A stretch of 64,000 nucleotides of DNA. Source: Octopus sinensis (Eukaryota). Below the pieces are notes generated by a model that worked only from the letters and a program-made list of their open reading frames with translations, made no database searches and had not been told where the DNA came from. Shown one piece after another: positions 1-36,559 of the stretch. The translations under genes were made by a program, and so were the position numbers. How positions within the stretch are numbered: position 1 is the first letter of the stretch; each line of letters begins with the position of its first letter. Where the stretch lies: positions 67,220,464 to 67,284,463 of the forward strand of contig NC_043011.1 of assembly GCF_006345805.1 (NCBI RefSeq), in the 5' to 3' direction.

Positions 1-890
1 AAAAATTGAAATATTATAAAAAGATACTTAGTCGTGAATGATATAAAGTTAAATTATACACCCCGCAAGAAATAGTAAATGACAAACAGGAACGTACAAT
101 AGTACACAAAACTTACTCAGTGGAAGCAGGAAATGTGAACATAATGTCGACAAAGCAGATACAGAAAGCCAGAGGAGCCAAACGATAGAGATACGTTTAG
201 AGAGGCAGAGATAGCGAGGAAGCATTCTGCAACCCCGGTGAAAAGAGAAGTGGTATTTATACCCCAACACCTTGGAAGGCATGCTTCCAGGATTAGGGTG
301 GAAGATATACCACCGGAAGTTGATGTAACCTGGATAGCAGCCGCTGTCTTACTCGGAAATGAGGAAAAGAGAGCGGTTCTTCAGGCCACGAAGACAGGAA
401 GTAGACACTGGAAAGGTCAGACACTGGATATGATTATCCAGGGGTTGAGAGAAACTAGCGAAAACATGACAGAATCGGTTACATTGGGTGATTTCATAAT
501 GAGGGTTAGGATGGAGGGCAGGACCCCTCGATGTGGTCTGAAAGGTCACCTTAGAGCAGACTGCCCTTCGCCGTCCAGAATGTCAGAAGAACAAATGAGG
601 AAGGATGAGGTAATACCACCAACAGCAACGAAAGAAATAAGAAAACGAAAACGACAGTGAATGGGAGAAAACGGGAAAGAGAGAAAAAGAAAAAAGCAAG
701 TCAAATGGACACAGACCCCCGCCCCATCCCAGAACCACCCAAGATCCACTCATACCCTCTTCGTCCCAGCCTCACCTTACAGACACCAAAACTCCTCACT
801 CCCCTCTGACAAAAAAGAACATGTTCAGACAAAAAGCCCAAACTTCCCCTCCTCCGGCAAAAGGAAAAAGCAATTATGTATGATGATTCG
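1..890 (+). pseudogene. Decayed gag-like ORF1 of an L1/Tx1-type non-LTR retrotransposon (5' part outside the window)
   Basis: ORF 238..660 (RIRVEDIPPEVDVTWI ... EGRTPRCGLKGHLRADC) aligns by eye with ORF1 at 29879..30244 (KAWICGLPPDIEPEWI ... EGRAPKCHRCLESGHIKKNC). The upstream frame ERTIVHKTYS matches DRTVVLRTYS. The knuckle has lost one Cys. No ORF2 follows; it ends at (TA)n. Confidence 0.8.
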
Positions 891-942
891 AACAAGGAAC
901 TTTATGAAGAGATGCAGACATAGCCAGATTTTATATATATAT

Positions 943-9000: not shown

Positions 9001-10015
9001 GTTTCAATTGCCCTAGCAGAAGCGTAAATAATTTCATTTAACTCAGTTAAATCAGGTTTTAATTCTCGTATTATTTCATTTGTTACATAGTAGCCAATTT
9101 GGATTTGTTTTTTATTTTGGTTTGTATTTGAGAGTTTATGAAGTGGTTCTCTATCATTCATACTTGTATGTCTTACAACTTCAAGCGTATTCAGGATTTT
9201 CTGCCTAATTTCTGCCATAGACTCTCTGTGTTCTTCAGCAAATGCGAGATCTTCAGTTACTGTTGTTTTTTCGTTTTCCTGGCTATCTTTAACAGGTACA
9301 ACTTCAAGCGTATTCAGGATTTTCTGCCTCATTTCTGCCATAGACTCTCTGTGTTCTTCAGCAAATGCGAGATCTTCAGTTACTGTTGTTTTTTCGTTTT
9401 CCTGGCTATCTTTAACAGGTACAATAGAATTTCTTGTATCTTCAGGCCTTTGCGTACTTTGGTCAGATGGCAGTCTTTCAATTAAGCCTCGTGGCGGGCT
9501 ATACTGTTCATCTGATTCTTCATTTCCTTTGTGTCTTATATTTATGTCATTTTCCGTTGCGTGCTTGATCGCGCTTATTTCACTGTCTGTGAGTCTGTTA
9601 TTTCTAAGGATATCCCTCCTCACATTTGCTAATTTGTTCTCGTCCAAATAGCGCCTACTGTCTTGATTCCGTGTTCTCCATATACTGTAAGAGTTTGCAG
9701 TGTGTATCTGTTGAGATGGCCTACCTAATGCATAGTAATAAGCGTATATTAGTTCTTTATACTCTTCTCGGGTCCATTTGTTCCGCTTACATTTTTCTTT
9801 CTGTGGTGGTTGTGGTGGTGAACTTGGAGGGCTCGAGTTGGGGGATTTCCCGTTCAAGTGACCATCCATGTCCGTATTCGGAGGAGAGTTTGTGCCAGTT
9901 GATGACTTTTCGATCCCAGGCTGGCTCTTCCCTGGGAGACGCGCTTCCAGATTAACCATAGGACAAGCGATTTGGTATACTGATTTAGTTTTCCTTTTAG
10001 TTTCCAAAAACATTT
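5975..10015 (-). mobile_element. Near full-length R4/Dong-clade non-LTR retrotransposon (RT plus restriction-like endonuclease)
   Basis: ORF pieces 10013..8178, 8206..8018 and 7990..6206. Motifs: [96 protein letters not shown]. One frameshift (about 8200) and one in-frame TGA (8018). The 3' UTR ends in a poly-A then (TAA)n. Confidence 0.93.
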
Positions 10016-10322
10016 TGGTGCTACGATAATGTTATCATTTTTTAGCTTTGATTGGCTCGTGGGGAGACGGCCATCATTGCTGAGTTGGGTGGCTGAGTGA
10101 CTTCAACACCAGAGTTCTTGCCTGTCAAATAATACTTTATTTGTGTTGGTTGAACTATTTGAGTGTGTGTGTGTGTAGATAGATAAGTTTCTTTGTGTGT
10201 AGATAGATAGATAGATTATCAGCACTATTACTATCATTATTATCATCATCACCACCATCACCATCAGTGATATTGTTTTTTTTTGTTTTTTTTAGGTGGG
10301 GTCCTATCGGTCAAAATTATTA

Positions 10323-10364
<42 letters not shown>

Positions 10365-10369
<5 letters not shown>

Positions 10370-10552
10370 TAGTTTTATTTTTATAGCGTGCTTTCACTTC
10401 ACTACCGAGCGCAGCTCTGTGTACCTTTGGTATGTGCTGTGATTTGTTGTGATGCTCTGATGGTTATTGTATGGAAAGTGTTTTGCGTAGGATGTGTGCA
10501 GTGACTAGTAGTGCAATTTTCTGTATGTTATATGTGTTTGTAAGTCCTGGTG

Positions 10553-10555
<3 letters not shown>
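10365..10555 (-). mobile_element. R4/Dong 3' end fragment, subfamily C
   Basis: Translates PGLTNTYNIQKIALLVTAHILRKTLSIQ*. The 3' UTR is nearly identical to 12827..13020. (ATT)n on both sides. Confidence 0.88.
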
Positions 10556-10589
<34 letters not shown>

Positions 10590-10602
10590 ATTATTATTAT
10601 TA

Positions 10603-12805
10603 TTCTATGTTTGACTTTTGCTTTATGTCTGTACAAGTTGGCTCCAAGTCTCACCCAGAGACCTCAAGAGACAATAGGTTGGAAGTTTACGTTGTTGTTA
10701 TGCCTAGTGTGCCATATATTTGGAATTTTTTTGTGTTGTACTAGTGGATGTCTAATACATAAAAAAAACTTTTGTTTTAAACCTTGGGATTACATAGAAA
10801 GTATTTTGCGTAGGATATGAGCAGTTCCCATGAGTACTATCTTTTGAATTTCTGCCAAGTTGGGGTTTCCTGGTATCTGCGTTAGGTAGCTATCAGCCCC
10901 TTTCGCTATCATTCCCAGGGCACCTATGACAACAGGTATTGTTTTCGTCTTCAGCTTCCACATTTTGCTGATTTCTATTTCAAGATCTTTATATTTGCTC
11001 AGTCTTTCGTAGGTCTTGACAGATACGTTTATATCGATTGGGACAGTCATATCGATGAGGAGGCATGTTCTTTGTCTGAAGTCTTTCAATATGATGTCTG
11101 GCCTATTTGTATCTATCTTTCTGTCAGTTTGAATGGTGAAGTTCCAGAGGAGTGAGATATGGTCATTTTCAAGCACTGGAGGTGGATTGTGTTCCCACCA
11201 GTTTTTTTCATGAGGCAAATCCAGGTTTTTGCAGATTACCCAGTAAATATATTGTGCAGCTCTATCATGCCTGTTGAGGTACTCTGTAGGCGCTAGAAGA
11301 CTGCATTTGGAGACAACATGATCAATGTTTTCATTTTGTTTTCGGCATACACGACATGTTGGGCTACTGCCGTTCTTTAATATATTGGCCTGGTAGTTTC
11401 TTGTTGGTAGGCATTGATCTTGAGCTGCTATGATAAACCCCTCTGTTTCAGATTTTAAGCCAGAGGCCATTAGCCATTGGCTTTGTCGATATCTGCATTA
11501 TTCGCTCTCTTTGGGTATTTGCCATAGAGAGGTTTTTCTTGCCGTTTATTATTGAGAATATCTAAGGCCGCAGTTTTGGCACGGGTTTTCATGCGCCTAG
11601 CTTTTTTTGTGCTTGTTTCTTGTATGTCTATCTCTATTTCCGAAATTGGTTGTATTTGGAATTCACTTAGATATTCCTTTGCCTGTTTTGTGACTGAGTA
11701 TGATGCTTTCTTTTTTTCATGTTTTGAGACAAGTTTTAACATCCAGTCCTCAGAGTTTTTCAGGTAGGTGTCTTGGCCAATTGTAGCAATCTTCATTGTT
11801 ATTGCCAGTTGCAAAAGACCACGGCCTCCCTCTTTTCTTGGCAGATAAAGTCGTTCTGTATCTGCCTTAGGGTGGTGCATTCTATGCATTGTCAACAGTT
11901 TTCTTATTTTTCTGTCGAGCTGACATATTTCAGTAATTGACTAGCTAACAATATTGAAACTGTAAGTCATGACTGGTATGGCTAATGCATTGATCGCTTC
12001 GATCCTGTTTCTCGCATTCAGCTCTGTCTTGAGTATTGCTCTCACTCTTCGATAGCATTCTCTTCTGATCCTTTTCTTCATCTCTGAATGCCTTATTCCG
12101 TTCCCTTCAATTACCCCTAGGTACTTGTAGCTCTCCGCTGGGTCTAGTTCTTTTATGACATTCTGCTGGTCAAGGTTAACGTTAGATGTTTCTGTCATTT
12201 TTCCTTTGATAAAGGTAGCTTTTGCACATTTATCGAGGCCGAATTCTATTCTGATGTCGTCACTGAATTGTTTGACTATCTCTAGTAAGCCCTTGAGTTG
12301 TTGGTCATTTTTTGCAAAAAGCTTTAAATCATCCATGTAAATGAGATGATTTATATTTTTATCAAATATTTTATACCCGTACTGCGCGTCATTGAGCAGC
12401 TTTGAGAGAAGTATTAAGGATAAACAAAAGAGGAGTGGTGACAGTGAGTCACCCTGGAAAATGCCACACGAAATGTTAACATCACCAGCATTTAAGGATT
12501 CATTGTCACTGTTCAGAGTTAGTGTGGTTCTCCATGATCTCATACTTACAGTCAAGACGTTTCGCAGAGTAGGTGCTATCTTATAAATTTCCAGGCATTT
12601 CCTAATCCAGCTATGTGGTAGGCTATCAAAAGCCTTTTTATAGTCTATCCAGGCTATTGATAAGTTTTTGTGTCGTTTGTGACAATCTTCTAAGATCATC
12701 TTATTGATGAGTAGTTGATCTTTACAGCCGTAGGATCCGCGTTTACATCCTTTCTGTTCATTAGGGAATATGCTGATGTCTGTTAAAAAACTATAGGTAT
12801 ATTCC
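10603..12805 (-). mobile_element. 5'-truncated R4/Dong element, subfamily B (RT and RLE)
   Basis: ORFs 12699..11941, 11895..11470 and 11470..10790 with [41 protein letters not shown] and KILSM*. (ATT)n flanks. Confidence 0.92.
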
Positions 12806-18129: not shown

Positions 18130-18300
18130 TCATTGCGCTTGATAACCGGTGTTGTGTTAGTTTCCTTCCCTGTAAGTTAGCAATTCATTAAAAGCATTGA
18201 AAAACAGTCAAGTACTGTGGTCAATTTGTTCGGTTGAATCCTTCAAGGTGGTACTTGAGCATGGCCGCAGTCCAGATACTAAAGGACGTAAAAATAAAGA
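18130..18300 (+). mobile_element. Diverged SINE family A 3' half
   Basis: ...GGTGGTACTTGAGCATGGCCGCAGTCCAGATACTAAAGGACGTAAAA matches the family A tail. Confidence 0.7.
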
Positions 18301-18399
18301 CAGTCAGATAGATAAGCAAACAGGCAGAAACACAGATAGACTGAGGAAATAACCACATGAGAGCAAAATGCTCTCACTCTTTCTTTTTTACGATTTCTT

Positions 18400-21300
18400 T
18401 TTCGCGACTCGCACGCACCATCTTTGCAACATTCACCCATCTTTTTTTTAATCTTTCGCGAGACAAAACTTCCCTCTCCATTCTCACCTTCCTTTTCAAG
18501 TGGTACTTGAAAAAGTTGATGAGCGATTGGCCAGAGAGGTAAGTGTTTGTCTCTAATCCTTTCGCTCAGGTCCACCACACACATTCTTTCACCATGGCCA
18601 CCAGTACGATGAAAACTGCCTTGCCTTCCCGGTTGAGGGAAGGGGGCGGAGCAACTTTCACGATAGACTCGGCCGATAGGTGGACTCGTCCCACGCGTAA
18701 CAGCAGCCGTTCGGCATAAGCCCACAGGTCTGAAATGGTTGAACACTGCACGAGTGCGTGCAGAACGGTTTCGTCGCTCTGACCGCATCTCGGGCAAGTC
18801 GGTCCAGTGTGTCTGGATCCGTGTCTGTAGAGCTTATCCCGAACAGGTAATGCTTCTCCATAGCACTGCCAGGCCAGGGATCTTTGGTGATTGTTCATAG
18901 GTCCCGGCCCGAAAGTTGTCCTGAACAGGCGAGTCAGGTGTTCCTCGTCGACGCCCAGACTCTGCCCGAGTTCGTTGTCGCACCTCCCCTCCACTAATCC
19001 TCTATAGAATGCCTTTGTTGTGATGGAGTCGCACAAGTTCGATCCCGGACGGCAGAGTTGCTTGAGAGCAACGCGACACTCGCGGTGCAATTTTCCTAGC
19101 TTGATCTATGACTGTAGTTCGTCCAAGGAGACGAGCTGCGGGAAAGCGCGCCGCACAAAAAGCGACCACACCTGTTCACCGTCGTCTATGAAGCGCCGGA
19201 GATGTCGCAGTCTCAGCGCATGTCTGCGCATCATCAACCACGGCACGCCCAGCCCTCCATTTAGCGGGTGTTGACAGCAAATGGATCGCCTAACCATCGG
19301 AACGTTTCCCTTCCGCAGGAAGCGGAAGAGTATACGTTCCAGTTTGGTGATGGTAGGGTCGGGACAAGGCACGACGGTCAAACGATACTCGATGACGGAT
19401 GCGATGTACGCGTTCGCCACCTCCGCCCGACCTTTTAGGTATAGCTTTCTCTCAGCCCATTTCTCGGTGAGAGTAGCCACCCTAGTCGTTATCTCGCCCC
19501 AGTTCTTCTCCATTTGGAGGTCCGGACCGAACCAGACCCCGAGCAATTTAACCGGTCCGTCCGTCCAGCGTCCCACGATGGAGACGCTGTTGGACGGCAT
19601 GGGCCTGCTTCTCCAGGTGCCGAGCCGCAAGCCCACTGACTTTTCCCGGTTAATTTTTGCTCCCGTTACCGCTTCGTATTCTTTTAGTGTCTCGCCGACC
19701 AGCTCGATGTGCTGGTAGCTCGACACTATAACGGTGACGTCATCCGCGTATGCAGACACGCTCCTCCCGCATCCCAGCTCTCGTGGAATGCCCCTCAGCG
19801 TCGCCAGTTTCCGCAATAGTGGCTCAAGAGTCAATACATACAGCAGCGATGAGAGGGAGCATCCCTGACGAACCGAACGCATTATGTTAAAAGGTCTGGA
19901 TAGATGACCATTTACGCGAACTACTTAGCGGATGCCGCTGTATAAGGCAGCGATCCAACCGCGGAAAACTGGACCGAAACCAGCCGCTTTAAGGACAGCC
20001 TCCAAGTAGTGATTGTCTACCCTATCGAAAGCTTTTGATTGATCCAAATTGATCAGCGCCCCACCCATGCCAGGATTCTTGACTACCCTGTCTATGATGT
20101 AGAGCATCAGATGGAGGTTGTCATGAATACTTCTACCCGGCACGGCGCATGTTTGCGCCTTGTCGATTAGTTTCTTGATGACAAGCGCCAACCTCTCGGC
20201 TAACAACTTGGCCAAAATTTTCAAATCTGCGTTGAGCAGAGTGATGGGCCTGTAATTATCTATGACGTCCCCCTTGTTTGGGTCTTTCTTAATCAGTGCC
20301 ACTGCTCCTCGCTTTACCAAAGCAGGAATACTCCCGTTTTGCTGCTAGTTGCAGTAGAGAGCTGCCAAGACGCCTCCAAATAAGTCTGGCATATGACAAT
20401 AAAGTTCGTAGGGCAGACCATCCAAGCCTGGTGACTTGTCTCTCGCGCAGCCCTCTATCGCATCCTGTACGTTCGCAGCTGTGATAGGCCTTTCACAAGA
20501 CTCCACCTCTCTTGCTGAGAGTCGTGGCAAGGCATGCAGGTAGTCACTAAAGTCTACTCTGCGTTCTGACCCACCACTTCTCCCAAACAGTTGGGTGAAG
20601 TGTTGTTGAAAAGCCCCACACATCCTTTTAGGCTCGAGCAATTCGCGCCCCTGTTCATCTATAAGAGACTTGATGGTGGCTCTGTTGCCTCGTTGCGTCT
20701 CCACCACTCGGGCCTCTTGGGCGGCTCCAACTCCTTCGTTTCTCAGGGCACGCATCCTAGCTCTGACAACGCATCCCTCGAGTTTGGCGTTGAGTTGTTG
20801 GTCGAGGGCCAATCTCGCCGTCAGTACGTTGGACGCGATGCCAGTTCTAAGCGTCTCTTCTAAAACCTTAACTAATTCTCCCTCTATTTTATTTCGGTCT
20901 AATGTTAGGGCTTTACTGTATCTGACTGATTCTGCTTTAATTGCTTTTTTTAGCGCATACCACCATCTGTTGTTGATGATGGTACCCGTCAAAGCTCTCT
21001 TAACTAATGTGCTGATCCGGTCCCTGTAAACCTGTCGTGCTGTAAAAGACGCGTTCAGTTTCCAGTAACCAGGACCCTGCCTATGTGTCTTATCTAAGTC
21101 AAGTGTACAAGTCACAAACTTGTGATCTGTGTAACTGACTATATGAAATTGTGGACAACCTACACTATTTTTATCTATTGTCCTACAGAATACTCTATCT
21201 AAGTATGATGTGGACGACCCGATGCGCTTACTCCATGTCCACATTGGCACATTCGGGTGGTCCAGTCGGTACTTGTCAGACAGTTGGAAACGTCTGAGCA

Positions 21301-21470
21301 GGTCTTTGAGGCATTTGCATCGCCTTCTATTGCTATCTCTGCCCACGTAGTCTAGATGCGTGTCCAGGGTGGCATCCCAATCCCCCACTAAAAGTAAAGG
21401 ACGAGACGTTCCTATGAAAGACTCTAGACGTCGAAAGAAATCTGGTCGGCCTGTTAAGGACGGAGCATAA
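18400..21470 (-). mobile_element. Tx1/L1-clade LINE ORF2 (APE endonuclease, RT, zinc-binding C-terminus), 5'-truncated and frameshifted
   Basis: IYAP..LLVGDWDA..SYLDRVF..TDHK..GPGYWKLN (APE); KSPGLDGLPYELY, NYRPITLLNADLKILAK, DQSKAFDRV, VRQGCSLS, AYADDV (RT); CPRCGQSDETVLHALVQC (C-terminal). Confidence 0.93.
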
Positions 21471-22345
21471 ATTTGTTGTTGTTTTGTTGTTGTTGCTGGT
21501 GGTGATGTTGTTGTTGGTGGTGATGTTGTTGTTGGCTGCAGTTGGTAAAATTGGTGTATTTGGTGTCTGATGTTTGATTGTGCAAGTAGGAAGGGGTGGA
21601 AAATTACTTGCATAATTTGTTCCTGGGTTTGAGCAGCTTTCGTCAATTTGTTTGGTGGTCACAGTCTTTTGTTTATCTCCTTCAGTTCTTGGTGTTGGAG
21701 GAAACAAGGTCTGAACGGAATTGTTGTTGTTGTTATTGTTGTTTTTGTTGGTGGTGTTGGCGGTGGTGTCAGTGGCAGAAGAGACAGCCGTGGCAGCAGA
21801 TATCGAAATGGTGGCGCAATTGTTGTTATTCTTGTTCTCATTGTTATTGTTTTTGTTATAGTTGAGGTAGTGGATGAGGTGGTGGTGGTGGTGGTGGTGG
21901 TGGTGGTGGTGGTGGTGGATGTGGTGGTGGTAGCAGTAGTAGTCTCGTTGTTGTTGTTGTTAGTGGTGGTAGTGGTGACAGGGCTGTAACCGCAAGTGGT
22001 TGCAGCGTTCACCACCACGTCACTCAGGTTTGTCTTTGTCGAATGTGTGTGTGTGCATAAGTTCTTTTTTTCTCCTAGCGTTTCAAGTCTAGGAAAATCC
22101 TGGTCCATAAAGGAATTCGACCAGCGTTCTACAATAACATTTCTCGACATTTTTTAATGTCGAGAAGAAAAATACGCAAATTAAATAGGGTTGAAACTGC
22201 CCCTAGGGGCGAATTCCTCCCTTGGAAAAGCACTCAAACGAAAGTTGGGTGCCTTACACACCTTATTTACAAAAATGTACACAAAATATGGGCTATAAAT
22301 AATCAAAATAAACGATTACTTTCGGAGCCGAAGTGACAGCACGTC
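21471..22345 (-). other. Unclassified segment: low-complexity (CAA/CAC)n ORF plus an upstream leader, abutting (GATA)n
   Basis: ORF 22150..21659 starts MSRNVIVERWSNSFMDQDFPRLE and then becomes Thr-rich. About 190 bp of non-repetitive leader with the palindrome GCCCCTAGGGGC. Joined directly to the middle of the Tx1 endonuclease. Confidence 0.4.
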
Positions 22346-22347
22346 CG

Positions 22348-22391
<44 letters not shown>

Positions 22392-22439
22392 GACCACAGT
22401 TGGGAGCAACATTCCAGACAACGGAGAGCAAAAGTCTAT

Positions 22440-22545
22440 CCGCCGCTTTTGCTGAACCGTTAAGTTTCAGGGACACAAACACACAAGCTTCAGTTGTCAA
22501 GCAATAGTGGCGGATCAAAAACAAAAACAAATCTACACCCACCCC

Positions 22546-22616
<71 letters not shown>

Positions 22617-22787
22617 CATGTATCTATCTATCTATCTATATATATACACGACGGGCTTCTTCCAATTTCAGCCTACCAAATCTACTCACAAGACTTTGGT
22701 CGATACTAGACTATAGTAGCAGGCAATAGTTTAAGGTGCTACGCAGTGGAACTGAACCCTAAACCATGTGGTTGGGAAGCAAGCTTC
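22440..22787 (-). mobile_element. SINE family A, cut within its tRNA head
   Basis: Body, internal microsatellite, then ...ACTGAACCCTAAACCATGTGGTTGGGAAGCAAGCTTC. The expected ACCACACAGCC is replaced by a retroelement 3' end. Confidence 0.85.
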
Positions 22788-23520
22788 TTTATCTGATTAC
22801 ATTTGTCATAAAGACATAATACAGATAGAAGCTTTCGGGCTGGACACAGACACAATCATGATAAGGAAATGAAAAAAGAGATGGTTGGTGGGAGAAGCAG
22901 CCAACTACCGCCGATTGTTACTTCCCAATAACTTTGTTGCTTTTTAAAACAAATGAGGTATTGAACCTCTTACAACAGTTACAAATTGAGGCGCTGAGCC
23001 ATTTACCAATAAAAAAAAATTTAGCAAATATATTCAACTTGAGGCGCTAAGCTTCTTAACAAAATCACCAAGTTCAAATCGTGGCACTAAGACCTCTTAT
23101 TCTGCCTCCCCGATTAAGTCTCTTGCCGCCTGCAGTCACAATCCCCACCCCCCATAAGAGATAATTGTACTTATCCTTGGTAAAGGAATCCATCACCCTG
23201 TAGAAATAATTTTCCGCCATGACCTCCGCAGCCACCTGCGGAGTCTAATCCGGGCTTTCAATGGAGATCAGGACCGCCTGTTCCCGACCTTCCAGATTCC
23301 TCACAAAGTTCTCCCTTAAGAAAGAAGATCACAAATTCCTCATTTATTATATTGGGAGGGGATAACAGTTTCCTCCGTCGGTGGCACAAATTCCCACCGA
23401 CGAGGTTTCGGGACATGCCGGCAGTGTACTAATAACCGCCAGCACTGTCCCTTTTTTTTCTATTTTCATCCCTGTTTTTGATACGGGAGGAGGTGGTTCC
23501 TTCGCTGTAACCGGAGAAAC
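22788..23520 (-). mobile_element. 5'-truncated ORF1-only retroelement (relative of 29016..31249)
   Basis: 3' UTR aligns with 29016..29230 (CATTTG.CATAAAG, AGCTTT.CGGGCTGGAC, GAGGTATT.AACCTCTTACAA). The ORF1 C-terminal remnant (CPETSSVG..VPPTEE, PQVAAEVMA) matches CPGTTSVGVVPPTRE and PQVAVEAVA. Confidence 0.85.
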
Positions 23521-24699
23521 ACATATCTACCTAACAATATACAGCGAACGCTGTTTATTGGATTAGGAAGATAATTTCCAAACTATAACCCAAGCTTTGA
23601 CCATGGAAAACACAACACCGTCTTAAAATATGGAAACGATATACATTAGGGAATAAAGTTTTTGTCTCTCATCAAAACAAAAGTCCAAATTGATCGACGT
23701 GACACTGAAGCGAGGCAAAGAAGCAGTTTAGCAATAGTGATGCATTTGCTGTTCACTTCAATGTTTGATATTATATTTGTTAATAGTTACATATATGAGT
23801 GAGATTTGGCTGCTAACTCTAGTAATTTGAGACAGGCTTCTGACTTTTCCAGTAAGTGTCCGTACATATCAAGTTCCATTAATTTCCAAAAGCTATTTTT
23901 TCAAATTATTTCCTTTGTCATTTTTCAATGCAATTTATTTTGATCGATTTCAATGAACATTATGTAGCGGCGGCTTGTTTGAGAAATGTTCGCAATGTTA
24001 ATAAAACCAATCAGCTATTCCTGAAATTATTTTTTATGGCCTATTAAAGCGATGATTTCTCTTTGTGATATCCACATTGCATTAACGTAAAATATGTGCG
24101 CATTACTCAGCTTGTTCAAGGGTAGATATAGTACATCCCTTTATTACCTGTTTTTTTTTTGTCATTGTACTTTTATCTTCGGTTATAACTGATTCGTTTA
24201 TCACTGATCCAGTACTGTACGCTTTCGCGATTAGCCAAAGATTCTGCTTTAACTGCGAAACAAACCCCAGCCATCGACATCCACAACTCTCATAACAAAT
24301 TGTTGTCTCGGAAAGAAACTTATTTTCTCCATATGTTCAATTATCAGTTCATCATTGATTAACATGGTGCTTCGTAGGGACCAAACACAAGTGATAAACG
24401 ACCATGGGTGGAAATCACTACTTCTCTTATATAGCCCTATTTCAACCTACGAGGAACCTATGAACAAATCAAGATGTGAATGTCAGTTCACTTATTTTTC
24501 CATTTCTCTCCGATTCGCTATTTCTTAGCTCGTCTTTTCCCCTTTTTTTTTTATCTCCTAAGACTTCTTTTTCCTACCTTTTTATCTCCTGGCTCTTTTA
24601 TTCCCCTGTTTTCTTCCCTCTCTATTTCTTCTATTGTACGTATTGGTCCCAGTCCAGCGTCACATGGAAACATTTTATTCCGTAACCATGACATAAGAA

Positions 24700-24860
24700 C
24701 AGATATCACACCCCTTTTTCTTTTACTGAGTCATATGTCGGTCCGTTGCAGGGTTATTCATTTGCAGCCGAGTTAACTGGAGCAAACTGAAATGAATTCC
24801 TTTGATCTAGAACACTATACCCTGTCCAGTCTGGGAATCGAAATAATATCATCGTGATCC
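24700..24860 (-). mobile_element. Diverged SINE family C
   Basis: CAGCCGAGTTAACTGGAGCAAA..GAAATGAA..GGGAATCGAA matches the copy at 45133..45463. Confidence 0.65.
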
Positions 24861-25221
24861 TGATTGCACCATCCTCATCTCTAGGTCATCTCCCTTTATC
24901 CCATTTATTTCCGCAGCTTTTTTACCTCGTATATTATTTCTAAGTTAGGTATAAACCAACCATTTAAAGGTAAGAAAGTACATCGATTAAACTGATATCT
25001 GTACTTCACTAGTATATTATTCCATCGAATCTTGAAGAACGCAAAGAGACACTGCATTTAGCGTGATTTCAAAATAAGAACGTAAGGAGCCAGAATTATT
25101 GTTATATAATTTTATGGCTGGCGCGCAACTGATTCTGCCAAGGGATGGCGCTGTTAGTTAACCATCATCGTTTATATGGAGACGTATTCAATTATATTTT
25201 TATTAATTTCTCGTACAATTT

Positions 25222-26531
25222 TTATGATCTAATCCATAATATTTCAATTCTGTGACGGAGTATCGGCTAATTTAATTAATTAAAACGGGTAATTGTGGCT
25301 CATTTAGATGAAAGAAAATTGCTTTAAAAACCGATTTGTATTAATTTCTCTCGTATTCCCCATCTCATTCACTCTCTCTATGTGCATGTATATGTGACTA
25401 TGCGTATCTATGCGTATGTGTGTGTTTGTTTCTGTGTGTGTATATTATCGTATCACTATGTAGACCAGAATATCGAATAGTGTTATACACCACTTGTCAC
25501 TATACATGCGCATTGTTGAAGCTGTTGAATAATATCACATGCTTACTAATGAGGTTGGTCAAAATGCATATATACATATTTATATATTCTTTTATCCTTT
25601 TACTTGTTTCAGTCATTTGACTGCGGCCATGCTGGATCACCGCCATTAGTTTAACACATCTACCCCCCAAACTTATTCCTTGTAACCCTAAACACTTATT
25701 TTATCGGTCATTTTTCTGAACCGCTAACTTACGGAGACGTAAACACACCACATCAGTTGTCAATCGATGGTGGGGGACAAACACAGACACACAAGCATAT
25801 ATATATTATATATATAATATATAAATATATATATATATATAGATATATATATTATATATTATATATATATATAATATATATGTATAAATATATATATGTA
25901 TAAATATATATATATGTATAAATATATATATATATATAAAATATTATTGAGACAAAACCACTATTTTGCAAAAACAAACAAGGAAAGACTTAATCAATAC
26001 ATAAAATTTAATAAATAGTCAAAAAAATTTAATAAATAGTCAAAAAAACCGCCACTACAATCGTTTCTTGTCTTGATCGACAATCTTCAGGTGGACTTCC
26101 AATAATTCAGTTACAAATTATGATCTAATCCATAATATTTCAATTCTGTGACGGAGTATCGGCTAATTTAATTAATTAAAACGGGTAATTGTGGCTCATT
26201 TAGATGAAAGAAAATTGCTTTAAAAACCGATTTGTATTAATTTCTCTCGTATTCCCCATCTCATTCACTCTCTCTATGTGCATGTATATGTGACTATGCG
26301 TATCTATGCGTATGTGTGTGTTTGTTTCTGTGTGTGTATATTATCGTATCACTATGTAGACCAGAATATCGAATAGTGTTATACACCACTTGTCACTATA
26401 CATGCGCATTGTTGAAGCTGTTGAATAATATCACATGCTTACTAATGAGGTTGGTCAAAATGGCATATTACATATTTATATATTCTTTTATCCTTTTACG
26501 TGGTTCAGTCATTGACTGCGGCCACGCTGGA
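25222..26531. repeat. About 410-bp direct duplication (25222..25637 and 26118..26531)
   Basis: Near-identical text from TTATGATCTAATCCATAATATTTC to GACTGCGGCCA(T/C)GCTGGA, offset 896 bp. Confidence 0.95.
26052..26094 (-). ncRNA. Minimal type I hammerhead ribozyme motif (family a), inverted copy
   Basis: Reverse complement of 26563..26605. Confidence 0.8.
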
Positions 26532-26562
26532 TTAGATCATAATGTAACTGAATTATGGAAGT

Positions 26563-26605
26563 CCACCTGAAGATTGTCGATCAAGACAAGAAACGATTGT
26601 AGTGG
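26563..26605 (+). ncRNA. Minimal type I hammerhead ribozyme motif (family a)
   Basis: CCAC-CTGAAGA-TTGTC(GATCAA)GACAA-GAAA-C(GATT)G-TA^-GTGG: 4-bp stem I, 5-bp stem II, minimal stem III. Confidence 0.8.
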
Positions 26606-26781
26606 CGGGTTTTTTTGTTGGATATTTATTAAATTTTATGTATTGATTAAGTCTTTCCTTGTTTGTTTTGCAAATAGTGGTTTTGTCTCAAATAATATTT
26701 ATAATATTTTACTATTAAAATTGGATTAATCCTAAATCTGATTTTTTTTCCCGTAAATTTGGATATATTCCTAATATTTAT

Positions 26782-26822
<41 letters not shown>

Positions 26823-27248
26823 TATATATATATATATTATATATATATTATATTATATACATATATATACATATATATATGCGAAGGTTTTCTTTCAGTT
26901 TCAGTCTACCAAATCGACTCACAAGGCTTTCGTCGGCTCGCAGAAGATATTTGCCTAAGGTGCCATGTAGTGGGACTGAACCCAGAACCATGTGGTTCGT
27001 AAGCAAACTACTTACCACACAGCCATTCGCGCGCGTATGATCTATATGATATATGAATATTGGCATTTATATATATATATATATATATATATATGATTGA
27101 TTGATTGATTGATTCTAGTTTCAGCTCACGAGCTGTGGCCATGCTGGGGCACCGCCATTTGGTGTTGCTACATGGTTTTACTTCACGAATGCTTTTTAGC
27201 AACTGCCATTTGGTGCATGAGAGAGTTCGATATATATATATATATTAT

Positions 27249-27302
<54 letters not shown>

Positions 27303-27305
<3 letters not shown>

Positions 27306-27703
27306 TTTACTTGTTTCAGTCATTGACTGTGGCCATGCTGGAGCACCGCCTTTAGTCGAGCAAATCCGGGACTTATTCTTTGTAAGCCCAGTACTTATTC
27401 TATCGGTCTCTTTTGCCGAACCGCTAAGTTACGGGGACGTAAACACACCAGCATCGGTTGTCAGGCAATGCTAGAGGGACAAATACACACATACAAACAT
27501 ATACACACAGATACATATATATATATATACATATATACGACATGCTTCTTTCAGTTTCCGTCTACCAAATCCACTCACGAGGCATTGGTCGGCCCGGGGC
27601 TATAGCAGAAGACACTTGCCCAAGATGCCACGCAGTGGGACTGAACCCGGAACCATGTGGTTGGTTAGCAAGCTACTTACCACACAGCCACTTCTGCGCA
27701 TAT
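27303..27703 (-). mobile_element. Full-length tRNA-derived SINE family A (empty target site)
   Basis: On the minus strand: A box TGGCTGTGTGG, B box GGTTCAGTCCC, body, internal CA/TA repeat, tail ...GTAAAAGA. Head intact: TTAGCAAGCTACTTACCACACAGCC. Confidence 0.92.
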
Positions 27704-28031
27704 ATATATATACGCATATTTGTATATATGTGTGAGTGTGCGCGTGCGTATGAATATGCGTTTGCGTGTCACCTTAAGAGTGTCGCTCACTTTACAAGAT
27801 ATTAATCGAGTGTTTACTGGAGTGCAATACTCATTTCAATCGTATGTAAATTTAGCCCAGGCTTAACTCGTCCAAACAAGAGAAAGGGACATGGAGAGGT
27901 GCATAACAAGCGATGCCTATATGTTATGAACTTGCGTAAATAAAACTAGTAATGAGATCATCCTTACCGATGTGTGTGTGTCTGAGTGTGTATGTGTGTG
28001 TGTGCGTGTGTGTGTGTCTGAGTGTGTGTGT

Positions 28032-28067
<36 letters not shown>

Positions 28068-28609
28068 ATAGCTACTTGTCTTAATATGTATTTACTCATC
28101 AAATATATTTTCAAATGCTATGAATGCTTCATTTGATATATATAACATCAACATACGAACATGTGACCGCTGGAATGTACAGACAAGCTTCTCAAAGACA
28201 ACGCTTCGATTATAACCACTTCTGCTCTTCTACACACGCGCGCGCGCGCAGATATATGCGTGTGTGGATGTCTGTGCATGTGCGTGTGTGGCACAGAATC
28301 TCTCAAGATGCCATTATCTAAGATTTAAGCAATCTTAATAAGATTACCTATAAAATAAACCAAGCATTATGAAAATAAGTACTCAACATATACAATGATT
28401 CCTCAAATGCTTTCAAATTTACATGTATGACGGATAGCTCAAAATACAGAGACTCGAAGACGTAAAAAAAGTTCAGAGACTATCATCAGTAGTCAAACGC
28501 ATATTACCATATTTTCGACCCCTGAGGAGTACCATAAATCAACTGCTGTCTAGTAGCCAATAGAAATCAGGAGCGAAACGTTAGTGTAATGTTTCTATCT
28601 AACTAGTAC

Positions 28610-31289
28610 TCTCTTTTTTATTCTTTTTACTCTTTTACTCTTTTACTTGTTTCAGTCATTTGACTGCGGCCATGCTGGAGCACCGCCTTTAGTCGAGCAA
28701 ATCGACCCCGGGACTTATTCTTTGTAATCCCAGTACTTATTCTATCGGTCTCTTTTGCCGAACCGCTAAGTGACGGGGACGTAAACACACCAGCATCGGC
28801 TGTCAAGCAATGGTAGGGGAAACAACAGACACACAAACCATACACACACATACATATATATATATACATATATACGACAGGCTTCTTTCAGTTTCCGTCT
28901 ACCATCCACTCACTCACAAGGCATTGGTCGGCCCGGGGCTATAGCAGAAGACACTTGCCCAAGATGCCACGCAGTGGGACTGAACCCGGAACCATGTGGT
29001 TGGTTAGCAAGCTACTTTATTTCAAAACATTTGCCATAAAGGCAGTACACAGATCAAGTTAGCTTTGCGGGCTGGACGAGGACATTAATGAGGTGAATGA
29101 TAATGAAAGAAGGATGATAAGGATGGGAGAAGACAAAAAGCGCCCGCCGGCTTTCGCTTCTCTAAAACATTGTTCTTTTTAAGGATAAACACAGAACGAG
29201 GTATTAAACCTCTTACAATTTTTCCAATTTTTGGGCTTAGCAGTCCATTATTAATACAAAACGAGGTATTAATCCTCTTACAATTTTTTAATTTTTGGAC
29301 TTAAGTCAATTACTAATAATACATATCGTCCTCGAAATAGCTTGTGCCCGCGCCCTCCACCATCAACCACGCCTCCCTCAGAACGTAATCAAGTTCCGAG
29401 TTCGCGTCGCCCGGGACCAAGTTATAATCTTCATTGAGCTCCTTTAGCCCAAGCGTCACGTCGAACGCCACGGCCTCCACAGCTACCTGCGGAGGCCATT
29501 CGGGGTCCTGTGTGAAGGCTAAAGGTGCTCCCTTGTAGTGCTCTACCATCACTTTTTCAATTTCTCCTCCTCTATAGAAGAGGACCAATACGTTCAGTTC
29601 TTTCGTTGGCGGCACAGTTCCCGCCAACGGTATTCCTTCTCTTGTCGGTGGCACAACCCCAACCGACGTAGTTCCGGGACATTCCGGTGCTACACTGACA
29701 GCCGGTAATGTCCCGTTTTTCTTCCTCTTTTTCTTTTTTTTTCCTTTTCAACTGAGGGAGGGTGCGTCTCCTCCGTGGCTGGAAGATTCGCCTTCCTTTC
29801 CTCATCCCTATTATCCTTTGGTGAGCACCCATTGTTGCTCACCTTCCTCTTTCGGCCTCTGTTTGAGGAGTCCTCTGCTTACTCGGCCGTTATCGTTCCC
29901 TCTTCTAGAGGGGTTTTACTTAACTGTTCCGGGATCCTATTTTGTTCCCGAGGACAGTTCTTCTTTATGTGGCCGGACTCCAAGCACCGATGACACTTAG
30001 GGGCGCGACCCTCAAGCATCACCGGGTACCTGCACCCGGCCATTTTCAAAAAATCTGGAAGAACCAGATTGGCTGATTGGGTCCACAGGGTCAAAATTGC
30101 TTTTGACCCAACCCAAGCAGCCGCAGGAAGAATTTTTACATTGAGGAGCTTAGTTTCGCTGTCATCCAGACCCCGGCGGATAGTCTCCTCTATCCACTCG
30201 GGTTCTATGTCGGGTGGCAATCCGCAGATCCAAGCTTTCATCAATTTTTTTTTGTGTACGTGGGCAGGAATAAGATTTCCTTACCCTCCAGGGGTTTGCT
30301 AGCAAATTTGCAAGCCTCTTCAGGGGTGTCAAATAGCAACCACACCGTTGCATATTTAACACCCCTGGAAATGAATTTAATTGTTGGCAAATACTCTTCC
30401 AACTCCTCCTCAATTGCCGTCTTTTCGAATAGGGCGATGGTGTCGAGTGCCTTGGAGTAGGTTCTCAACACCACCGTCCTATCTTCACGGTCTTTTAGCC
30501 ACTTTTTAGGTGGTATGATTTCCCCTTCCAAAATTTTGTTATTTTTCATTGCCATGTTTTTTTTTAAATATATTCAAATTAAACTCAAAAAGCAGGAAGA
30601 AAAAAGTTCAAAAGTCCAAATAAAATTTGATCGATTTTTGAAAAAACAAAAAGGAGAAAGCACAACAGAAGGGAAGAAATCAACGGAAAGTCGCAATAAA
30701 GAACAAAAAAACAAAAGGGAGGGTTAAATGAAGTTCAAAAAAAAGTTAATAAACAGAAAAAACACAGCAAAAATATTCTGGCCTTACGGTACTCCCGGCC
30801 TGGGTTGAACCTGGAACGCCGCAACTGCAACACAACCTCCACAAAAATGGGTCCGAAAGGTAATCCAATAGTGGCTTATTTTTATAATTTTCTTGCGAAG
30901 TAGTAGTTTTCACAATTCATAAAAGTTCTTCACAGCACAATACAATTCACACAATTACGTGAGAAAATTATTTACTCAATTTATCGAAGACGAATACGCC
31001 CCCCAAAAATCTCACAATTCAGCGACAAAAATATATTTGCCCCATGTCGGCAGAATCAGAATTCTGGATCCAGTAAGACTTCCTTCCTGTAAAAAACAAT
31101 TCTCAACAAAAACTCCCACTGGACCCAGAAAACAGAATCTTACCTTACATGGGGCTTCCAAAGTTTTCAATTCAAGGAGGCTTCAAAAGCACGTCTTCAC
31201 CGCTTCAGTGCCAAACACAACACTGACTCGCACATGCGCAGAAGCAACCGTTAGCAAGCTACGTACCACACAGCCACTCCTGCGCCTAT
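28610..31289 (-). mobile_element. SINE family A (28610..29015 plus 31250..31289) interrupted by a 2.2-kb insertion
   Basis: The two parts join into a complete SINE once one copy of GTTAGCAAGCTAC and the insert are removed. Confidence 0.92.
29016..31249 (-). mobile_element. ORF1-only (half-L1-like) non-autonomous retroelement, 2234 bp, 13-bp TSD
   Basis: TSD GTTAGCAAGCTAC at 29003..29015 and 31250..31262. About 690-bp 5' UTR. ORF1 30555..29313 (about 414 codons, two A-run frameshifts and one TAA) with the knuckle CHRCLESGHIKKNC. About 300-bp 3' UTR ending AATAAA. No EN or RT motifs. Confidence 0.88.
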
Positions 31290-31321
31290 TTGATGAGTAA
31301 ATACATATTAAGACAAGTAGC

Positions 31322-31363
<42 letters not shown>

Positions 31364-31887
31364 CACACATATTTATCAATCTATCAACTTGTCTATCTAT
31401 CAATCTGTGCTTATAGATATGCATGCATATACGGATGGATGGATGGATGGATGGATGGATAGATGGATCGATGGATCGATGGATGGAGGGAGGGATGGAT
31501 GGATGGATGGATGGGTAGTTGGATGAACTGCTACCTAGCTAGCGAGCATCTGCTAGTCGGCAATGACTCATTATGCCATAATTGGGACGGAAGGCATCAC
31601 CACTTGTCTGCATGGTTAATTCCTGACTCACACCAGTAAGGCCGTGCGATAAATATGCTTTTATACATGCCAAAATATTGGAATATATGTTCTTGTGTGT
31701 GTGTGTACATGTATGTATATGTATATTAATAATAAATAGTAAATAATATAATTACATATATGGGTGCAGGACGTCACCAGCGGTTCAAACAACAATAGGT
31801 CAAAAACACGAGAAACCATGGAGAACAGGACAAGTAAACACAGAGAAGCGAGCCTTCGTCAGTTGTTGGTTGTCTACTCATCTCCAG

Positions 31888-35721: not shown

Positions 35722-36350
35722 TACGAGGTCTGATCAATAAGTATCCAGACCGTTGCTATAGTAACGAAGCTAAAGTACGCAGAGTGAAGCCGCTTGGCAT
35801 AGACTGAGTTTGACCTCTGCTGTGTATGTGCACTAAGTTTTAACGTTCTAGCTCACTTCCGCTGCTTACAGTATTGTTTGGAAGGAAGGTATGTAGCGTG
35901 CGATCGTTTTATTTACCATGACAGAGAAGGTGGTCACAGCGATACCTGCCCAGAGGCCTACGCAAAGTTGCAGAAAGTGTATAAAGTGGAGTGTATGAGC
36001 TGCGTACATGTGTACGAGTGGTTCAGACGTTTCCAAAATGGCAGAACCAATGTCGATATTATCAAACGTTCTGGGAGACCTACAGCCAGCAGAACTAAGA
36101 AAAACATCGCAGACATTCCTGCAACTGTGAAGGGAAATCGTCGAATCGCCATTCGTGAGTTACCAGAAGATGTGCAGATTAGTTACGGTTCAGTCCAGTC
36201 CAGTATCACTAAAGATTTGGATATGAGACGCATGTCTGCCAAGTTTGTGCCAAAACTGCTTTCAGCTGACCAAAAAGACACTCGGATTTCAGTGGCACAA
36301 GATCTCCTTGGTTGTGTCAAGAACGATGAAAACATTTTGAAAACTTTACG
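35722..36350 (+). mobile_element. Mariner transposon 5' half
   Basis: TA + CGAGGTCTGATCAATAAGTATCC TIR-like start. AYAKLQKVY..VYEWFRRFQNGRT..RSGRP..AKFVPKLLS covers the HTH domains and the WVPHEL-equivalent linker. No right end seen. Confidence 0.88.
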
Positions 36351-36559
36351 TAGGCCTCTGAGCAGGTATCACCAGGATTTTGGCAAAAATTGATGCAGAT
36401 TCTGTGCTCTGTTTTCTCTGTCGTGGTCAATGAGACAGTTTTGTATAAATTTGATGATATTCTCCTGTCATTTTAATCCTTCCTCTAGGGGTTGATGTTA
36501 ATAACCCGTAAACATATTTTTCCTCATACATTCTGAGAAGTGAAAGTGAAGCAGATTCA

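Follow-up and report, generated by a model that had tools for sequence, protein, structure and literature searches.

We describe E1, a retrotransposon copy of 2234 bp in a 64,000-nucleotide stretch of the Octopus sinensis genome (assembly GCF_006345805.1, contig NC_043011.1, positions 67,220,464 to 67,284,463 of the forward strand), which we refer to as the window. In our reading, to which we assign a probability of roughly 0.7, E1 is a dead copy of an octopod family of non-autonomous retrotransposons without long terminal repeats (non-LTR) that carry only the first open reading frame (ORF1), derive from long interspersed nuclear elements (LINEs) of the L1/Tx1 superclade and are mobilised in trans by target-primed reverse transcription (TPRT). 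E1 interrupts the head of a short interspersed nuclear element (SINE), and related copies are found at the same SINE position. Our sample of the family comprises E1, a second copy in the window (E2) and two further O. sinensis copies that were reached via two protein matches (L001 and L002). All positions are window coordinates unless stated otherwise; element coordinates run 5' to 3' on the minus strand.

Insertion into the host SINE

A preliminary description of this DNA had proposed a minus-strand insert of 2234 bp with a 13-bp target-site duplication (TSD), and this is confirmed. The insert, whose sense strand is the minus strand, has the 3' terminus ...GAAATAAA without an A-tail. The 13-mer GTTAGCAAGCTAC has three matches in the window (29003-29015, 31250-31262 and 27664-27676), where 0.07 are expected by chance. 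Two of these flank E1 and are identical at 13/13 positions, and the third lies within an uninterrupted SINE. When E1 is excised in silico, the joined flanks align to this intact SINE as one piece across the junction, with 92% identity, and the SINE is restored. We thus conclude that E1 is a true insertion with a 13-bp TSD. Precise insertion, a TSD and a restorable empty site characterise TPRT-type non-LTR insertions, and E1 has all three; the insertion and its duplication are observed directly. The features of the site are:

27366-27703, minus strand: uninterrupted SINE of the same subfamily as the E1 host, the empty-site reference (by alignment)
28622-29015, minus strand: host SINE body and tail downstream of the insertion, with the B-box-like GGTTCAGTCCC and a (GTAAAAGA)n-type tail (by the 92% identity to SINE 27366-27703 and the tail alignment)
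29003-29015, no strand assigned: TSD copy on the 3' side of E1 (13-mer match)
29016-31249, minus strand: E1, a complete ORF1-only LINE derivative, bounded by the TSD; it begins at the same point as the O. sinensis copies and terminates at the same point as E2
31250-31262, no strand assigned: TSD copy on the 5' side of E1, reading GTAGCTTGCTAAC on the minus strand and matching both the other copy and 27664-27676 in the intact SINE without a difference
31263-31289, minus strand: host SINE head upstream of the insertion, GCGCAGGAGTGGCTGTGTGGTAC, A-box-like

Host SINE and E1 share their strand, with E1 placed between ...TGGCTGTGTGGTAA, which is A-box-like, and GTAGCTTGCTAAC. The site reads ...GGCTGTGTGGTA(A) / GTAGCTTGCTAAC / CAACCACATGGTTCCGGGTTCAGTCC on the minus strand, and the insertion point on the sense strand can be written GTGGTAA^GTAGCTTGC. 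It lies directly past the A-box-like motif and about 20 nt ahead of the B-box-like motif. Read by eye, the A box TGGCTGTGTGG fits TRGCNNAGTGG at 10/11 positions; the B box GGTTCAGTCCC fits GGTTCGANNCC at 9/11 and follows about 40 nt downstream of the A box, which is a tRNA-like spacing. In the SINE head, ARAGORN found 0 tRNA genes and Rfam gave no tRNA match at E<=1; across 22300-31600, Rfam returned microsatellite artefacts only. It is thus the box motifs that carry the label 'tRNA-derived'. The earlier statement that E1 sits past the A box of a tRNA-derived SINE, in the same orientation, holds for position, orientation and box motifs, but neither program recognises a tRNA there.

One base next to the site deviates from the other SINEs. 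At position 31263 (plus strand) the window has G where the SINE consensus has T, giving GGTAC in place of the GGTAA of all intact SINEs. This base adjoins the TSD on the 5' side of E1 and coincides with the predicted position of the first nick.

Anatomy of E1

E1 has a long 5' untranslated region (UTR), a damaged ORF1 and a downstream region with a short 3'-terminal stem-loop. In element coordinates, the 5' UTR covers 1-694 and is followed by an ATG at 695, an A-rich run at about 1501-1530, a GC-richer stretch up to 1935 and an AT-rich 3' UTR of 299 nt, which includes two direct repeats and terminates in ...CTGCCTTTATGGCAAATGTTTTGAAATAAA. The parts are, all on the minus strand:

30556-31249: 5' UTR, 694 nt, with homology to the corresponding regions of L001 and L002; the initial 9 nt, GGTTGCTTC, are similar to the target GCTTGCTTC
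30241-30555: ORF1 part a, 104 codons, first RRM-like domain, terminated early by a 1-nt deletion in an A-run
29879-30244: ORF1 part b, second RRM-like domain and CCHC knuckle (29951-29998), stopping at a TAA where relatives have GAG or GAT
29690-29878: ORF1 part c, basic low-complexity tail, finishing in or just after the A-rich run (29720-29749); the intact relative P0001 continues through to KGRKRKI*
29675-29715: strong, conserved hairpin (GGGACATTACCGG...CCGGAATGTCCC) adjoining the 3' side of the A-run; separate predictions for E1, E2, L001 and L002 agree on its location
29643-29666: second hairpin, from structure prediction
29316-29747: open frame of 144 codons, in the -1 frame relative to ORF1, without coding signal and without homologues
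29185-29318: two direct repeats of about 70 nt in the 3' UTR, both of which contain a small GAGGnTTAATACCTC hairpin; one unit is kept in E2
29016-29044: 3' terminal module, the stem-loop TGCC-TTTAT-GGCA followed by AAATGTTTTGAAATAAA; AATAAA forms the last six bases, without poly(A)

The long 5' UTR noted previously was thus measured at 694 nt. For the gag-like ORF1 with a CCHC knuckle, the knuckle pattern is present (CHRCLESGHIKKNC, CX2CX4HX4C), but it scores 18.9 bits against zf-CCHC, below the Pfam cut-off of 20.8 that the relatives exceed, and the coding part is not one frame but spread over three (30241-30555, 29879-30244 and 29313-29747). Compared with P0001, an intact O. sinensis ORF1 of 281 codons (63% identity), E1 has a 1-nt deletion in an A-run at about position 997 and a GAG to TAA nonsense change at element position 1369. 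An intact ORF1 is expected to end inside or right after the A-rich run, leaving about 715 nt beyond the ORF1 end in E1. The supposed short 3' UTR therefore does end in AATAAA, but the region after ORF1 is longer and includes the 144-codon open frame.

Neither an endonuclease nor a reverse transcriptase was detected, in line with what had been stated before. Pfam gave no match to either domain in E1, and a profile built from six cephalopod ORF2s found nothing in any sense frame of E1, nor in E2, L001 and L002. This absence is a direct observation, and by it E1 falls outside the autonomous LINEs, which have both enzymes of their own. Pfam likewise gave no match to Transposase_22 in E1. The 3' UTR as a whole folds no more stably than shuffled sequences (z = 0.14 and -0.6), and its conserved part consists of small local hairpins only.

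The 5' terminus of E1 (GGTTGCTTC, 31240-31249, minus strand) is similar to the target GCTTGCTTCC; more precisely, its first nine bases resemble the target of the SINE subfamily with the CTTCC variant. Because the element starts with target-like bases, the point where the SINE passes into the element can be fixed only to within about 7-10 nt in L001 (5478-5489) and L002 (15730-15741). Judging from these bases, the target-like 5' end could stem from 5' transduction or carry-over from a parent copy, or from microhomology-mediated joining.

Reuse of the SINE site by related copies

All four copies (4/4) occupy one position of the SINE head in one orientation; the sample is small and partly biased. 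E2 and its SINE are located as follows:

22788 to about 23515, minus strand: E2, a decayed relative truncated at its 5' end, which occupies the same SINE position and covers E1 positions of about 1460-2234, with 71% identity in the 3' UTR
22629-22785, minus strand: diverged SINE of a different subfamily with E2 at its 3' junction; GAAGCTTGCTTCC at the site, upstream head missing

The E2 junction reads ...CAGATAAA / GAAGCTTGCTTCC CAACCACATGG, so its last base abuts the SINE position equivalent to that of E1. E2 is thus a 5'-truncated copy whose 3' end falls on the same base as in E1, as expected of truncated copies with a constant 3' end. At the other end of the element, the L001 junction is ...GGCTGTGTGGTAAGTAGCTTGCTTCC / TGTGCATGCG... 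and that of L002 is ...TGCCGTGTGGTAAGAAGTTTGCTTCC / ACTGCGCATGTGCGAG...; L002 spans E1 positions 3-1920 at 75% identity. Both junctions are seen in E1, the 3' junction only in E2, and the 5' junction only in L001 and L002. Membership of the family and the reuse of site and orientation are directly observed.

The copies also agree in organisation. E1 and L002 have in common the end of ORF1, the A-run and a downstream region without ORF2, and L001 agrees with them over the part that it covers. We thus find three diverged copies (63-77% identical) with the same arrangement from ORF1 to the 3' side, which constitutes an ORF1-only family of the HAL1 type. The lack of an ORF2 after ORF1 in E1, L001 and L002, together with four copies at one site, shows that E1 is not a one-off deletion. 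The proposal of a non-autonomous, ORF1-only LINE derivative is therefore borne out as a trait of the family.

Variants at the site separate the insertion events. In E1, both TSD copies have the CTAAC variant, and the host SINE is 92% identical to its intact neighbour. The SINE that hosts E2 is 77-80% identical and has CTTCC, and further variants occur at the site among intact SINEs. As CTAAC is found in both E1 TSDs whereas the diverged E2 SINE has CTTCC, at least two separate insertions took place at one site. Among the six SINE heads that were found independently of the element, one is occupied besides E1 (1/6), which hints at, and does not prove, an appreciable occupancy of SINE heads. A search for the junction pattern in the JGI metagenomes gave 0 matches.

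L002 also bears on gene annotation. In L002:10001-36638, the annotated 'K02A2.6-like' gene model of O. sinensis (P0002) is chimeric: exon 1 runs through the 5' UTR of the element and the start of ORF1, and the remainder is an rve integrase fragment of a long terminal repeat (LTR) element.

The ORF1 protein

A profile search of 1.84 billion representative proteins yielded 348 relatives of ORF1. The nearest come from Octopus vulgaris, O. bimaculoides, O. sinensis and Argonauta hians and are ORF1s of cephalopod LINEs. The relatives have in common two RRM-like units, the motif LLPxYxGRR, a knuckle region of the form VEGRKPxCxxCGxxGHxxxxCP and a low-complexity linker; some have a C-terminal domain. 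We modelled ORF1 with AlphaFold (AF2), which reached a pLDDT of 82 with an alignment of 80 sequences; an alignment of four sequences gave 38 and was unusable. The model contains two beta-alpha-beta-beta-alpha-beta units, and its best matches in the PDB are tandem-RRM proteins (NONO/SFPQ/PSPC1 and hnRNP A1 UP1); the Pfam RRM models gave no match to ORF1. By the model and the knuckle pattern, ORF1 thus has what defines a Type I ORF1 protein, namely at least one RRM and a CCHC knuckle. This class, described by Khazina and Weichenrieder, has been linked to plant L1 and animal Tx1-like elements (PMC5203782).

ORF1 shows the signature of selection. Between E1 and L001, the differences per codon position are 0.22/0.13/0.47, and this observed excess at third positions implies that ORF1 was under selection while the ORF1-only lineage diversified. 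By these codon comparisons, ORF1 was kept by purifying selection after the loss of ORF2, as in HAL1 (PMC5753468).

A fragment of another Type I ORF1 lies at 63-930 (plus strand) and is 24-31% identical to the ORF1 of E1 and to the Argonauta ORF1. It has a degenerate knuckle (RCGLKGHLRADC), is truncated by the start of the window and is followed by (TA)n and another SINE-like piece.

The open frame downstream of ORF1

The 144-codon frame lies in the -1 frame relative to ORF1 in L001 and L002 as well. Its differences per codon position are 0.275/0.18/0.22 against L002 and 0.45/0.39/0.44 against L001, without third-position excess, so that no coding signal is seen. No homologues were found among 5.8 billion proteins. 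We considered a C-terminal domain of ORF1, based on a likeness by eye ('YxxLKxxFPxDVG') to the longer ORF1 relatives, but a profile scores nothing there. A relic of ORF2 was likewise discarded: the best tblastn match, to the Argonauta APE region, has E=0.78, and the ORF2 profile is empty. A frame of this length was reached in only 1/2000 shuffles; on its codon pattern we treat it as probably non-coding or a relic.

An in-frame A AAA AAA heptamer lies inside the A-rich run of E1 and is followed by the conserved hairpin of 12-16 bp, at the same place in E2, L001 and L002. Run and hairpin might form a -1 frameshift cassette that feeds the 144-codon frame; the codon pattern of that frame gives no sign of coding constraint.

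Autonomous relatives and the shared 3' stem-loop

We sampled autonomous relatives from Argonauta (L003), O. vulgaris (L004), O. sinensis (L005) and the window itself (18290-22150). The Argonauta ORF1 P0021 belongs to the full LINE L003, in which ORF1 is followed by an ORF2 with Exo_endo_phos, RVT_1 and zf-RVT. This ORF2 aligns end to end with the human L1 ORF2 protein (ORF2p; 4e-42). The autonomous relatives align best with human L1 ORF2p, which places them at the level of the L1/Tx1 superclade only. L003 has a 16-bp TSD, no poly(A) and the 3' end ...GCCCTTGTGGCGAATAAAGAAATG. The relative in the window (minus strand) is a 5'-truncated LINE of the same superclade, and its ORF2 protein is 59% identical to that of the Argonauta LINE.

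The 3' ends connect E1 to these LINEs. Ten 3' ends (E1, E2 and eight autonomous copies) have in common a 4-bp stem, a 5-nt loop and an A-rich tail. Across the alignment of these stems, pairing reaches 97.5% of cells, compared to 25-45% in slid controls, and compensatory changes occur in three of the four pairs. The stem-loop is thus observed as a shared, covarying structure, as expected if one kind of ORF2p recognises both E1-type and autonomous elements. E1 and E2 terminate in AATAAA/GATAAA; in the autonomous relatives, this motif is found no more than about 20 nt before the end. All of these elements lack poly(A). In O. vulgaris, L1-Tx1 LINEs have been reported among the recently active families, and SINEs make up 11.6% of the genome (PMC13282606).

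The LINE at 18290-22150 has a frameshifted APE domain, RVT_1 and zf-RVT; at about 18290 its 3' end meets the tail of a SINE in antisense orientation, and a (GATA)n tract at 22350-22392 borders its 5' side. Full-length autonomous LINEs also occur in tandem head-to-tail arrays, at L004:2440-17026 (O. vulgaris OX597840.1) and L005:580-16850 (O. sinensis CM016867.1). The arrays have a period of about 5.3 kb and are nearly free of spacers, and one O. vulgaris unit has an intact ORF2 of 1132 codons. This arrangement suggests self-targeting, template jumping or array amplification.

Mobilisation and choice of the site

We propose that a live copy would be transcribed by RNA polymerase II from its 5' UTR. 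Its Type I ORF1 protein, with two RRM-like domains, a CCHC knuckle and a basic tail as in the family, would coat its own RNA. The endonuclease and reverse transcriptase of an autonomous relative would then copy this RNA into the genome, recognising the 3' stem-loop and the A-rich tail. TPRT would begin with a nick in the antisense strand of the SINE, at ...GCTAC^TTACC, and a second nick 13 bp away would give the 13-bp duplication. We infer that the site choice would come from an ORF2p acting in trans, encoded by another element.

Two versions of this mechanism differ in what selects the site. In the version that we favour, and to which we give about even odds, a specialised endonuclease of a partner outside our sample would choose the SINE head, as in the transposon-targeting elements of the Tx1 clade and their passengers (PMC4494074, PMC4640811). 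In the other, which we regard as clearly less probable, the RNA of the element would choose the site through a transcript end derived from the SINE. Since the poly(A) signal forms the last six bases of the element, transcripts are expected to end in SINE sequence; they would run 10-30 nt into the flanking SINE, the tail would pair with nicked SINE DNA, and a non-specific ORF2p of ordinary LINEs from this group would prime there, producing an identical junction each time. In R1Bm, read-through target sequence positions reverse transcription. The position of the signal, terminal in E1 and E2 and close to the end in the autonomous relatives, and the lack of poly(A) in all of them fit such guidance, as do the absence of SINE specificity from all sampled autonomous relatives and the first 9 nt of E1, which look like target carried over from a parent copy. 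Nevertheless, the nick must still land in the SINE head, the SINE subfamilies of E1 and E2 differ at the 13-nt site, so that pairing would be imperfect, and specificity in the Tx1 and R1 clades has been ascribed mainly to the endonuclease (PMC4494074, PMC4640811). Taken further, the specificity would be carried by the non-autonomous element itself, its SINE-tailed transcripts guiding a non-specific LINE enzyme as a heritable, RNA-templated homing device, and we consider this more doubtful still.

Explanations without site specificity fare worse. One ancient insertion might have multiplied as a block of SINE and insert, by segmental duplication or by chimeric read-through retrotransposition via the SINE tail, with the junctions inherited unchanged by every copy. 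The divergence between the elements E1 and E2 (71% identity) is near that of their SINEs (77-80%), E2 with its SINE body resembles a 5'-truncated chimeric retrocopy, and L001, L002 and E2 share a ...GCTTCC variant at the site. On the other hand, E1 has CTAAC in its TSDs, a SINE that is 92% identical to its own subfamily and an element that is 71-77% identical to its relatives, which requires an insertion event of its own; the flanks beyond the SINEs are unrelated. A chimeric transcript would also lack the upstream SINE head that is seen in E1, L001 and L002, and transcription by RNA polymerase III would stop at the first T-run. The sense strand of the element has 27 runs of at least four T, so a polymerase III transcript from the SINE head could not carry the composite of SINE and insert. 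We therefore regard block multiplication as improbable. Less probable by far is that E1 arose by a one-off internal deletion from an autonomous LINE which had landed in a SINE by chance: deleted LINE copies are common and the 144-codon frame might be a relic, but the common organisation of the three diverged copies, the silence of the family ORF2 profile on any endonuclease or reverse transcriptase remnant and the repeated use of one site all speak against it.

Several observations weigh against mobilisation in trans of a site-specific ORF1-only family. The ORF1 of E1 shares only 24-28% identity with its counterparts in the sampled autonomous LINEs. The sample has only four copies, two of them located via the element itself, and E1 alone shows the two junctions: the upstream head is missing from E2 and the downstream part from L001 and L002, so that later rearrangement or deletion of the target is needed for three of the four copies. 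Furthermore, every observed copy is defective, with the frameshift and stop in E1, a Cys to Phe change at the first Cys of the knuckle in P0001 and stops in L002. Lastly, no autonomous element was found at the SINE-head site, and the sampled autonomous copies all lie outside SINE heads; the partner that would supply the specificity was thus not found in this sample. The preliminary idea of a borrowed, site-specific Tx1 ORF2 is accordingly unproven, as the sampled autonomous relatives share the 3' stem-loop but insert elsewhere. That the SINE serves as a 'safe harbour' is an interpretation.

Other features of the window

Beside a SINE tail, a direct repeat of 300 bp (25222-25521 and 26118-26417) is 100% identical at a spacing of 896 bp, and an inverted repeat of 60 bp (26042-26101 and 26556-26615) is 98% complementary. 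The repeats at 25222-26615 could be a recent local duplication or inversion, or an assembly artefact. Two further kinds of transposable element were noted:

6206-12699, minus strand: two adjacent copies of another LINE family with a reverse transcriptase (RVT_1, weak zf-RVT)
35878-36393, plus strand: fragment of a Mos1/mariner-type transposase (HTH_48)

Comparison with known retrotransposons

The closest structural parallel is HAL1 of mammals, which is likewise non-autonomous, has only an ORF1 that is under selection and is presumed to be mobilised in trans by the ORF2p of an autonomous relative (PMC5753468). HAL1 has a Type II (Transposase_22) ORF1, a poly(A) tail and insertions without sequence specificity, whereas the E1 family combines a Type I ORF1 with a 3' end that forms a stem-loop and lacks poly(A), uses one SINE site and occurs in octopods. 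The comparison with HAL1 drawn earlier thus holds for an ORF1-only family but fails for HAL1 in the strict sense, which includes the Type II ORF1 and poly(A).

In its targeting, the family resembles the transposon-targeting Tx1 LINEs. Target-specific insertion of Tx1 elements into other transposons, and non-autonomous elements that share the target, are documented: Tx1L in Tx1D, Tx1-Mar in Mariner-N4_AMi, Tx1-9_AMi in Harbinger, and the passengers SINEU (PMC4494074). These elements use TPRT of the APE type, take a fixed place and orientation inside another repeat, share the target with their passengers and have a target-like 5' end (PMC4494074). The E1 family parallels them in the fixed place and orientation, in the target-like 5' end and in its proposed mode of insertion. 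Here, in contrast, the target is a tRNA-like SINE head, the passenger codes for an ORF1 and is not a SINE, and an autonomous partner with this target was not found. As E1 has no reverse transcriptase, its likeness to Tx1 lies in its targeting. A multicopy target of the tRNA type is also shared with LINEs in tRNA genes (NeSL-1_TV in tRNA-Pro, and the planarian LIN15_SM in tRNA-Arg and LIN25_SM in tRNA-Glu; PMC4640811). However, those are autonomous members of the NeSL group with restriction-like endonucleases that insert into genuine tRNA genes, whereas the E1 target is not recognised by ARAGORN or Rfam.

The 3' end has a counterpart in LINE/SINE pairs of the stringent type, such as the eel UnaL2/UnaSINE1, in which the reverse transcriptase recognises a 3' stem-loop. 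As in these pairs, a short 3' stem-loop and a short tail are common to autonomous and non-autonomous elements, and priming independent of poly(A) is predicted for E1 by analogy. The tail of the E1 family differs in being A-rich and unique, not a short tandem repeat. In the literature, Repbase and Dfam excluded, we found neither a SINE head described as a target nor a site-specific ORF1-only passenger. Targeting of tRNA genes and of other transposons is thus already known, and what the E1 family would add, a combination of HAL1-like structure and Tx1-like targeting, is partly supported.

Together, SINEs and LINEs account for about a quarter of octopus DNA (PMC13282606), and nested insertions of the E1 kind split SINE annotations, which would be relevant to octopus repeat libraries. 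If the present reading is true, the HAL1 idea would extend past mammals and past the Type II ORF1, and SINE heads would join the known targets of site-specific retrotransposons. The family would then also offer a handle on how target choice is inherited in elements without an endonuclease. If the pattern is confirmed, the E1 family would be a LINE-type element that parasitises two others: an autonomous LINE for its enzyme and an abundant SINE as its landing site.

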